A DNA stretch of 63,072 nucleotides, the filler included, from Salisapilia sapeloensis CBS 127946 (lineage: Eukaryota; Protista; Oomycota): NCBI GenBank assembly GCA_023334545.1. It is 5 parts of 5 records of this genome, joined end to end, with 100 filler letters (N's around TTAATTAATTAA, not from the genome) between each part and the next. Parts side by side here need not be neighbours in the genome. Positions count along the whole stretch, not along the records: positions 30,272 to 40,172 come from JAADVB010000453.1; 4 more parts are not named here. The stretch is one strand, 5' to 3'. This document shows, one piece after another, positions 31,408 to 34,639 of the stretch. Within the stretch, counting starts at the first letter, position 1. Every line of letters starts with the position of its first letter. Made by a program: the position numbers and the translations under genes. The notes beneath the pieces are model-generated. The model saw only the letters and a program-made list of their open reading frames with translations. It was not told where the DNA came from and searched no databases.

Positions 31408-34400
31408 ATGCCGAGTACTATCGGGAGCGTCTGGGCATCGGCATTTGGGTGGGGCGCAGATGAAGAGCTACAGCAATTTCATCGAGTCAGATATACGTCA
31501 TTGCGAGAGCAATTCACATTTCGTATTGATAACGCGTCGGACCCATTGAGCTCCGGTATGACGGAGGGAGATGCGACATGGAACCAGTATTATTCGGATG
31601 AAGCACTCTTGGTCGAGATTAACAAAGACCTAGATCGCCTCCATCCATCCGGTGACGAGCTATTCTTTCAGTGTGACTTGTATCGTTCCATCCTTCGTCG
31701 CGTGTTATTCGTCTGGAGTCGTTTGCATCCAGAAATCTCGTATCACCAAGGCATGCATGACGTCGCTGCCGTTGTCCTGTACGCCTTTATCACAGAGCAG
31801 CAGGAAGATTCTACAATCCCACTAGAAAAACCCTCAGAGCTATTCTCAGCTGCATCGGACCCTGTCGCACCAGAGTATCTCGAAGCAGACACATTCCTAG
31901 GTCTAGAGGCACTCTTGATTTACCTCGAGCCATTCTATGACACGAATGTATCATCTACAGAAACACAGGGGGGTGAAGATGATCCAAGTTCGTTGTTTGG
32001 AGAGAAAACAGAGGCTTCTATGGAAGACACAGACGCCGCTGCACCTCAATCGATCTTAACTCGCTTCTGCCGATATGTACAACATGATTTACTAGGTAAG
32101 AAAGACGTGTACTTATCGAAACACTTGAAAGAGTTGCAAGTACAGCCAGAGACGTACTGCCTTCCATGGGTTCGTTTACTATTTGCACGAGAATTCGAGC
32201 TACCATCGTTGCTAGAGCTGTGGACTGGTATGATTCTAGATGAACAGCGTACTCCGTTGGACTACACGAACGACCCGCAGCTTTTATCAGCAGAGAATAC
32301 AGATAACGGAGAGGCTTGGGATCATCTGCCTCTCCTGCAGTATGCATGCGTCGGCCGGCTCCTTCAACTAGCACCCAAGCTCCGTCGATCAGACAAGACC
32401 GAGTGCCTCACCTTGTTGATGCATTCTCCTAACGATGATGCAGCATCGTCTGACCCTGGTCAGAGCCTCTTACAAATAGCTCACCAGCTCCGTGATCCGC
32501 TGGGACTCGAGACCGAGTCGGATGGTGCGATCGACGTCGTTGAGTTCCGCGATGGACCACTCGGCATCGTTCTAACGGCAGCACCTGATCCGCATGACAA
32601 CCAGCTCGCAGTTAAAATGTTCATGAACTCGTCAGAGGATCCTCCTCTACCTGGTCAAGCTGAGAGAAGTGGACAGATAAAGGTCGGCGACATTCTAGTC
32701 TCGATCAATGGCGTACCTATGGAAGGGTACACGACAGAAGAGGTCAAGGTACAGTTCATCCAGACTCTTTCGCGACCGCTTTACATTGCGTTTGAACATA
32801 TTGGACCTCGTCCGACGAAAAAACTAGATCCTCCCGTTCCAGACGATGCGTTAGAGTCACCTGCAGATGCAGATGCCGTACAAGAGCGATTCCTTCGAGG
32901 TGAACTCTGCTACGCTCTAGTCGAAAGTGGACTACAGACGTACACAATGACGCGAGAAGGCACTTGTGTCCCGAGCTTTACGGATGGCAAGCTGTACATT
33001 ACCAACTACCGTTGTATCTTTACGTTAAACAGTTCTAGCACCGTGATTAAGTGGCAAGTTCCTGTGCTAACGATTGCAGCAATTCAAGGTATGAATACCC
33101 CGGCTGCATCACCCACGTCTTCTCCAAACGGAGGAAATAAGAGCATGGATGCGACCTACTACCTTGTCCTTCGATGCAAAGACCTTCAAGTCGCTCGATT
33201 TGCTTTTAAAAGCTTCTCCGAGTACAATAACGTCGTCAAGTGTCTCGATGTGTTGGCGTTTCCTAAGAGTCTCATGCATGCGTTTTGCTTTTCGTATTCC
33301 CCATTGAAAGATGATAGACGTATGTCCTTTGATATGATGCGCGAGTACGATCGCATTGGCTTGTTGTCAAGATCAGATCGATTGCGTGTGTTTGATCAGT
33401 CGTCTAGGTACTCCATGTGTCCGACGTATCCTCGCTACGTCGTCGTTCCGGCACATATATCCGACAAGGAGCTGTATGCCTCTGCTTCCTTCCGGTCTCA
33501 AGGTCGATTACCAGTCATCAGCTGGCTGCATCCTAGGAACGGTGCGACGATCGCTCGATGTAGTCAACCTCTTGTCGGGTTCAAGTCCGCTCGAAACCCT
33601 CATGACGAGAACCTCGTGCAAGCACTTTGCTGTGCGACGGCAAAGCACTCCTTTGGTCGGTACATGATAATGGACGTACGAAGTCAAATGGCTGCGATGG
33701 GAAATAAGGCCATGGGTAAAGGCACAGAGATCGCGGCGAATTACAAAGGCAGTAAGCTGCTCTTTATGAACATTGATAACATCCATTCTATTCGACAGAG
33801 TCTGCAGCAACTAGCTGCGATCTTTGAACCGCCGTTGCAAGGTCTAAACCACGAAAGTAGTTCGTCTAGTTACTATGGAAAAGTAGATGCGACGGGATGG
33901 CTGCGGCATGTCCGACTGATATTAAAGGCATCTGTGGAGCTGGCCATGTCGGTGCAGAACGGCATATCCGTCTTGGCACATTGCAGCGACGGGTGGGATC
34001 GCACGGCGCAAATGGTGTCGCTAGCAGAGTTCCTACTGGACCCATACTATCGGACGCTGGAAGGCTTTGCTTGTCTTATTGAGAAGGAGTGGGCGAGTTT
34101 CGGACACCAGTTCGCCTCCCGCTGTGGCCATACGAAGCGAGATATGAGTAACGATCAACGTTCTCCTGTCTTTCTCCTGTGGCTGGACTGTGTCTGGCAG
34201 TTTGTGCGTCAGTTTCCATCCGAGTGCGAGTTTAATGAACGGTTACTACTAGCTCTGGCGGATCATACGCACTCGTGCAAGTACTGGAACTTCCTATTCG
34301 ACTGTGAAAAGCAACGGTACGATCGTCTTTGTATGTCCCTCGTTTCTCCTACTTATCTATGTTTAGCGTCGAAGCGTTGGGTCGAGGGACCGCTGCGTCG

Positions 34401-34639
34401 ATTTGGGACGACGTCTATACGGACGAGGAAGACTACACGAACCAATTCTTTGCGCCGTCGGAGAATGACGAGTTAGCAATCCCGAATACGTTGAGCAAAA
34501 ACATCAAGTACGTCATGCGTTTCCTATGGACGTAATGGAAACTCGAGACTAATCATGTGCCTGTAGATTATGGAAAGGATACTTTTGCCGTTGGGATCCG
34601 ACGTTTGTGCCGCCTGTACCGGCATGGCAATCGTATTAG
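31408..34639 (+). CDS. TBC (RabGAP) - PDZ - GRAM - myotubularin phosphoinositide 3-phosphatase fusion; introns near 34317-34367 and 34508-34567
   Basis: INKDLDRLHP and YHQGMHDV (TBC IxxDxxR/YxQ fingers); GPLGIVL...GQIKVGDILVSING (PDZ); GKLYITNYRCIF (GRAM); SFRSQGRLP, HCSDGWDRTAQ, LIEKEWASFGHQF, QRSPVFLLWLDCVWQ (myotubularin). Confidence 0.9.

Follow-up and report, generated by a model that had tools for sequence, protein, structure and literature searches.

A TBC1D5-like RabGAP joined to PDZ, PH-GRAM, and myotubularin phosphatase domains in the oomycete Salisapilia sapeloensis

Structure of the fusion gene and its transcript

The window analyzed in this study is a stretch of 63,072 nucleotides (nt) of DNA, composed of five parts joined by filler, from the oomycete Salisapilia sapeloensis CBS 127946 (assembly GCA_023334545.1). 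The part at positions 30272-40172 carries a gene, referred to here as the fusion gene, whose product combines a TBC1D5-like Rab GTPase-activating protein (RabGAP) with a PDZ domain, a PH-GRAM domain, and a myotubularin phosphatase. The coding region (31408..34639, plus strand) comprises three exons and encodes approximately 1040 amino acid residues, as judged from the open reading frame (ORF), its translation, the splice joints, the spanning contigs, and the C-termini of orthologues. The long open frame on the plus strand runs from 31387 to 34476, and its first ATG is at 31408. Exon 1 (31408..34316) encodes residues 1 to 969 and two bases of codon 970, and all four domains lie inside it. Intron 1 (34317..34366) is 50 nt long with GT..AG ends, and the corresponding contig joint is at 34315/34366 (cut +1) in the contig sets X1, X2, X3, and X5. 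Exon 2 (34367..34507) is translated as VEALGRG...LSKNI, in agreement with the tail of orthologue P0002 (...LSKNIK), and is followed by intron 2 (34508..34566; 59 nt, GT..AG), for which the same four sets have a joint at 34507/34567. Exon 3 (34567..34639) encodes LWKGYFCRWDPTFVPPVPAWQSY and then a TAG stop codon ending at 34639; this tail is conserved in P0002 and in P0009 from Thraustotheca. All of these exons and introns are on the plus strand. The similarity searches described below used exon 1, whole or in part; exons 2 and 3 were each translated on their own.

Without splicing, the frame closes at 34476 after a tail that is not conserved, whereas removal of both introns restores the conserved myotubularin C-terminus, with a near-verbatim match to the Pythium and Thraustotheca orthologues, and the stop codon of the fusion gene thus ends at 34639. 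This end coordinate had been given in an initial annotation of the locus, made from the sequence alone; it is correct after splicing, although the raw frame is shorter. An intron at the position of intron 1 is also implied for other oomycetes, where protein calls made from ORFs end at ...ERQR. An additional upstream exon was considered and rejected: the orthologues share this start (M...W..AFG...), and the first bases of the contigs lie 5-11 nt before the ATG.

X1, X2, and X3 are runs of one study, the sole study whose runs hold this sequence, and were labelled 'RNA?' as a guess. Each contains one contig that extends with 0 mismatches from 31397-31403 past the stop codon with both introns removed. 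These contigs are cDNA-like, i.e., the two introns are skipped exactly and the upstream intergenic region (30794-31375) is uncovered. X5, which comes from a second organism in another study and consists of contig fragments with approximately 2-8% differences, has the same two intron joints. Because single intron-less contigs span the whole gene in three runs, the fusion gene is expressed as one transcript, and not as the two transcripts that the initial annotation had raised as a counterpossibility. A different concern is an artifact in which two neighboring genes were joined by misassembly or read-through: the X3 contig extends beyond the fusion gene into that of the downstream kinase, which shows that neighbors can be merged in contigs of this compact genome, while in X1 the kinase gene is on a contig separate from that of the fusion gene. 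However, the 2.9-kb ORF is continuous with no stop between the domains, conserved PDZ and GRAM sequence fills the gap between the TBC domain and the phosphatase, five or more oomycete genera share the domain order in independent genomes, and single contigs span the gene in all three runs. Such an artifact is therefore extremely improbable, and misassembly is effectively excluded. The fusion gene is a real, transcribed oomycete gene.

Domain architecture and family affinities

From the N-terminus to the C-terminus, the order of the domains is TBC RabGAP, PDZ, PH-GRAM, and myotubularin phosphatase, all encoded on the plus strand. The TBC domain (31408..32502; approximately residues 1 to 365) was identified by Pfam, BLASTP, hhalign, AlphaFold2 (AF2), and Foldseek, and the Pfam RabGAP-TBC match (E 3e-21) consists of two stretches split by inserts. 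Within the stretch DPLS...INKDLDR (31540-31638) are a loop equivalent to insertion 1 (Ins1) of TBC1D5, DPLSSGMTEGDATW (31540..31581), in which Pro46, Leu47, and Trp58 are invariant among the orthologues, and the arginine finger INKDLDR (IxxDxxR; residues 71 to 77, 31618..31638). D74 and R77 of this finger, as well as Y112, Q114, and G115 of the glutamine finger YHQG (YxQ; residues 112 to 115, 31741..31752), are invariant in 61 sequences. The PDZ domain (32530..32802; approximately residues 375 to 465) has the carboxylate-binding loop PLGIVL. Its Pfam match (PF00595, residues 416 to 452; 24.4 bits, cut-off of 23.2) is marginal in this protein alone; the domain is found in nine of ten orthologues with a best E of 2e-7, and L385, G386, and I387 of the loop are invariant. 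The Pfam GRAM match of the PH-GRAM domain (32890..33252; approximately residues 495 to 615) is weak, with 17.3 bits under a cut-off of 23.6. The domain is nevertheless real: the alignment with MTMR2 crystal chains (E 4e-97) begins within the PH-GRAM of MTMR2 and extends as far as the phosphatase end, which confirms the domain independently of Pfam.

The myotubularin phosphatase (33283..34316; residues 626 to 969) is matched by Pfam Myotub-related (PF06602, residues 626 to 970, E 5e-128) and by the crystal chains of MTMR2, MTMR1, MTMR6, and MTMR8 (E 4e-97 to 9e-81), and a myotubularin C-terminal tail of the LW..Y..RW.P type is present. The active-site P-loop HCSDGWDRT (CX5R; 33979..34005) is not substituted and is invariant in all orthologues that reach that far. 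A DENN domain was not matched in the Pfam scan of the exon 1 product. The E-values of these domains are far beyond chance. The initial annotation had claimed one continuous ORF with the four domains, intact INKDLDR, YHQG, and HCSDGWDRT motifs, and no stop or intron between the domains. The ORF, the Pfam matches, and the MTMR2 alignment bear this out; the motifs lie where they had been placed and are conserved in the orthologues, and both introns are 3' of the last domain, after the phosphatase core.

Two side observations concern the phosphatase end of the protein. A 32-nt segment that encodes HCSDGWDRT (33979-34010) matches other contigs of X1 and X3 (3.9 and 4.0 kb) with 2 mismatches, after which the sequences diverge. 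The extreme C-termini of the fusion protein and its orthologues are conserved (...VPAWQSY, ...VPALQFY, and ...VPKNQFY); since the protein has both its own PDZ domain and this conserved C-terminus, a contact between the tail and the PDZ domain, either intramolecular or dimer-forming, is conceivable, which is pure speculation.

The AF2 model of the TBC domain, calculated with a 61-sequence alignment, has a predicted local distance difference test (pLDDT) score of 84.7 and a predicted template modeling (pTM) score of 0.86, and its low-confidence loops are at residues 41-55, 131-150, and 181-212. The top Foldseek matches of this model are TBC1D22A, Gyp1, and the Gyp1-Rab33 transition-state complex (E 1e-8, TM score of 0.6-0.7), and by sequence the best solved TBC chain is Gyp1 (E 6e-8, 35-59 bits). 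A Gyp1/TBC1D22 affinity, which comes from the solved structures only, was rejected, as TBC1D5 sequences match more closely than any solved chain. BLASTP of the fusion TBC part against Xenopus TBC1D5 gives an E of 3e-32 with 30% identity over 304 residues, and hhalign gives 99.9%. The nearest stand-alone proteins to the fusion TBC profile score 140-200 bits, and several of them are named TBC1D5. A search that started from P0046, a protist TBC-myotubularin protein described below, likewise retrieved TBC1D5 of oyster, octopus, Xenopus, Capsaspora, fungi, and plants. The fusion TBC domain has the TBC1D5 family signatures YxQGMH(D/E) and (W)xRLLFxREF. By these sequence comparisons, the fusion TBC domain is assigned to the TBC1D5 family, an affinity that is new in this analysis.

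An alternative is that the TBC domain acts on another Rab, either Rab1/Rab33-like or Rab5-like, so that early-endosome or Golgi identity would be erased, which would be nearer to the endosome "identity switch" proposed in the initial annotation. The pairing of TBC domains with Rabs is known to be hard to predict, and the nearest solved structures by both sequence and fold, Gyp1 and TBC1D22A/B, are Golgi GAPs for Rab1/Rab33, no solved chain being as close to the fusion TBC domain as the TBC1D5 sequences. On the other hand, the sequence is far closer to TBC1D5 than to Gyp1 (3e-32 against 6e-8), and in a tree of TBC domains built with FastTree, the 17 fusion rows group as a single clade (local support of 99) amid TBC1D5-family matches. 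A different Rab substrate is therefore possible and rather unlikely.

Human TBC1D5 is a Rab7 GAP that is bound to retromer by its N140-P141-L142...W150 loop, i.e., insertion 1 contacts VPS29 through N140, P141, L142, and W150, and mutation of any of these abolishes binding (Jia et al., PMC5105194). In the fusion proteins, the Pro-Leu pair and the Trp are invariant in aligned orthologues, and the Asn of TBC1D5 is replaced by Asp or His. The pattern xPL[ST]x6W occurs in 95 of the 152 nonfusion proteins of the fetched set, nearly all of which are stand-alone TBC1D5-like proteins. The expanded loop (residues 47-58 in S. sapeloensis) has up to 69 acidic or Ser-rich residues in the P0003/P0004 group. 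A second variable loop (residues 131-150, containing TIPLEKPSELF) is at the place equivalent to Ins2 of TBC1D5, in which a hydrophobic IPF patch contacts VPS35.

Compared with the TBC1D5 of animals, plants, amoebae, and many fungi, the fusion protein has the same dual fingers, the same family signatures, and a Pro-Leu-Ser loop just before the W..(Y/F)F..D..L...I..D..R block. TBC1D5 differs in that it is without PDZ, GRAM, and phosphatase domains, its long C-terminal tail being replaced by PDZ-GRAM-myotubularin in the fusion protein, and the Ins1-like loop of the latter is 3 residues longer in S. sapeloensis and far longer in Pythium and Phytophthora. The PH-GRAM and phosphatase regions correspond end to end to those of MTMR2, and the CSDGWDRT active site is that of MTM1, MTMR1, and MTMR2, whereas the animal and yeast forms have neither a RabGAP nor an internal PDZ domain such as the one built into the fusion protein. 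In MTMR1 and MTMR2, the chain finishes with a PDZ-binding motif, and PDZ proteins are bound in trans. TBC1D8, TBC1D9, and TBC1D9B (GRAM-GRAM-TBC-EF hand) belong to another TBC subfamily, with GRAM N-terminal to TBC and no phosphatase or PDZ domain.

The closest concept is that of MTMR5 and MTMR13 (Sbf; DENN-PH-GRAM-pseudophosphatase-PH), the single well-known precedent for a Rab regulator and a myotubularin fold in one chain, by which the control of Rabs and of phosphatidylinositol 3-phosphate (PI3P) is coupled. Their logic is the opposite, in that a Rab guanine nucleotide exchange factor (GEF) is joined to a dead phosphatase, whereas a Rab GAP would be joined to an apparently live phosphatase in the fusion protein; DENN domains are Rab GEFs (PMC2958468). 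By this parallel, in which the phosphatase is dead and DENN acts on Rabs, one of the two catalytic domains of the fusion protein could be a targeting or scaffold module without turnover. Dead-enzyme myotubularins are common (PMC2927912), and some orthologues have greatly enlarged TBC loops. However, neither the arginine and glutamine fingers nor any part of the CSDGWDR loop varies among orthologues that are only 43-50% identical, which points to selection for catalysis in both domains and makes a noncatalytic role for either of them very unlikely.

Orthologues, distribution, and gene order

The word-based search with exon 1 retrieved nine proteins of 43-50% identity, all with PF00566 and PF06602, among which Pythium insidiosum, Phytophthora fragariaefolia, and Thraustotheca clavata are named. 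The exhaustive TBC profile search and local hidden Markov models added Lagenidium giganteum, Achlya hypogyna, several metagenome and Logan proteins, and one PDZ-less TBC-myotubularin protein (P0046, from a EukProt transcriptome). In the ESM Atlas, there is one cluster of 67 members, mostly from Oomycota, with Myotub-related in 100% and RabGAP-TBC in 79%. IxxDxxR, YxQGM, and CSDGWDR are kept in all ten aligned orthologues, and conservation of the PDZ and GRAM regions equals that of the two enzyme domains. In the TBC tree, the S. sapeloensis branch lies outside the group of Lagenidium, Pythium, and Phytophthora and within the Saprolegniales split. From the identity, the shared motifs and architecture, and the gene order described below, the S. 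sapeloensis gene is placed as an orthologue of a conserved oomycete family, and the fusion protein appears to be largely restricted to oomycetes.

The initial annotation had regarded the fusion as uncharacterized and had allowed that it might be already described and widespread. It is widespread within one lineage, the oomycetes, and present in databases, but no description of a TBC-myotubularin fusion was found in the searchable literature (subscription papers, e.g., domain-centric oomycete surveys, were outside this scope). The myotubularin survey PMC2927912 never mentions TBC, RabGAP, PDZ, or oomycetes, and the fusion is likewise absent from PMC3655817 on TBC evolution, from PMC10925823 on the oomycete phosphatome, and from PMC2705460 on domain fusions in oomycetes. 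The single parts are ordinary members of known families, whereas the TBC-PDZ-GRAM-myotubularin combination is not known to occur in animals or yeast.

Downstream of the fusion gene are a Ser/Thr protein kinase gene (34824-36053, plus strand), an alpha-kinase gene with introns (36281-37753, plus strand), and a GT1 (ALG2-like) glycosyltransferase gene (38079-39499, minus strand). The order of these four genes, with GT1 on the minus strand, is identical in Pythium insidiosum, and the microsynteny is therefore conserved across distant oomycetes. The distance from the fusion stop codon to the ATG of the protein kinase gene is 184 nt (34640-34823), so that the untranslated regions are very close or overlapping. 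Upstream, several unrelated X1-X3 contigs match approximately 40-50 nt of 30601-30650 with 2-3 mismatches and then continue into unlike sequence, i.e., this is a short dispersed repeat of the intergenic region, and a small tandem repeat with a 21-nt unit (2.1-2.6 copies) is at 30452-30511.

In public databases, members of the family carry automatically assigned names: 'Phosphatidylinositol-3-phosphatase', 'hypothetical protein', or, wrongly, 'alpha-1,3-mannosyltransferase'. The last name is found in NCBI and UniRef on the Saprolegniales orthologues P0009 (Thraustotheca) and P0012 (Achlya). It looks like an annotation-transfer error, because in Achlya no glycosyltransferase was found in the 8 kb downstream of the fusion orthologue. 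P0046 (EukProt GILJ01011769; 1253 residues) has a TBC1D5-type TBC domain with an intact HPLS-x6-W loop, a long linker, no PDZ domain, and a myotubularin with an intact active site. Its TBC domain falls outside the oomycete fusion clade in the tree, and a word search retrieved no close relative; the protein may represent a separate or more ancient fusion in a protist. P0171 and P0172, TBC1D5-like proteins from ENA metagenomes, have glutathione S-transferase domains (PF02798, PF14497, and PF13409) in the same chain, a further uncommon architecture around TBC1D5.

A possible single-chain remover of Rab7-GTP and PI3P

TBC domains inactivate Rabs by means of dual catalytic fingers. Myotubularins take the 3-phosphate off PI3P and phosphatidylinositol 3,5-bisphosphate [PI(3,5)P2] (PMC6176412), and retromer is recruited by Rab7 and the PI3P-binding SNX3 (PMC5105194). 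The fusion suggests that both enzymes act on the same endosomal membrane. In the mechanism that we propose, the PH-GRAM domain, possibly together with the TBC Pro-Leu loop and the PDZ domain, would direct it to membranes of endosomes or vacuoles bearing Rab7 and PI3P. At those membranes, the TBC domain would accelerate GTP hydrolysis by Rab7, and the phosphatase would strip the 3-phosphate from PI3P or PI(3,5)P2. Since retromer is kept on membranes by Rab7-GTP and PI3P-binding sorting nexins, one chain could remove both anchors at once, and the protein would be a single-chain terminator of a coat or membrane domain. We give a probability of about 0.5 to this reading, namely that an oomycete TBC1D5-PDZ-PH-GRAM-MTM1/MTMR2-like protein is a single-chain remover of the Rab7-GTP and PI3P anchors of retromer and sorting nexins; the two activities, the Rab substrate, retromer binding, and the location are what we infer from the sequence. 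The architecture and motifs would fit the removal of both marks, as in the identity switch of the initial annotation, whereas its choice of Rab5/7/11 was too generic, since a TBC1D5-type domain would point to Rab7 and retromer.

Several points weigh against this reading. Rab specificity is not readable from a TBC sequence. The S. sapeloensis loop has D-P-L in place of N-P-L, though N140A kills binding in human TBC1D5, and the spacing from Leu to Trp, which is 8 in TBC1D5 and the Saprolegniales fusions, is 11 in S. sapeloensis and 14-69 in the Pythium and Phytophthora fusions. Because the Asn is replaced and this spacing is lengthened, retromer binding may be lost; judged from the sequence, it is plausible but not secure. 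The AF2 model of the full-length protein, based on a 10-sequence alignment, is poor (pLDDT of 48) and unusable for domain packing. Finally, from the 32-nt active-site matches in other contigs, the organism expresses at least one further myotubularin with an intact P-loop.

The same fusion could instead have a role in autophagy, clearing PI3P from phagophores or autophagosomes while a Rab on these membranes is turned off. In animals, links to autophagy exist for TBC1D5 and for several myotubularins, and the domain identities are the same under either reading; no LIR motif or ATG-binding element was noticed, although no search was aimed at one, and the conserved Pro-Leu loop points to VPS29. An autophagic role is thus a minority possibility, one that is compatible with the removal of Rab7-GTP and PI3P from retromer-bearing membranes rather than exclusive of it.

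A bolder form of the retromer reading, which we offer tentatively and consider doubtful, is that the fusion protein is the oomycete TBC1D5 itself, the Rab7 GAP of retromer, permanently wired to a PI3P phosphatase, and is a one-protein uncoating enzyme that strips both retromer/sorting-nexin anchors. If this were true, the fusion would be a 'Rosetta-stone' prediction of an unrecognized functional partnership of TBC1D5 with MTM1/MTMR2 in animals and plants, and the built-in PDZ domain would replace the PDZ proteins that bind the tails of animal myotubularins.

Endosome identity is written in two codes, Rab GTPases and phosphoinositides, and the fusion bears on how their removal is coordinated. 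If a live myotubularin is joined in it to a TBC1D5-type GAP, this conserved natural fusion would be direct genetic evidence that both reactions form one step, and a single gene offers a simple test system in which point mutants of R77/Q114 or C859 can be used. The main value of the fusion is the testable TBC1D5-myotubularin link, which is worth seeking in animals, where retromer is tied to neurodegeneration and MTM1 and MTMR2 to myopathy and neuropathy. Oomycetes include major pathogens of crops and fish, and the fusion protein would be a lineage-specific component of their trafficking.

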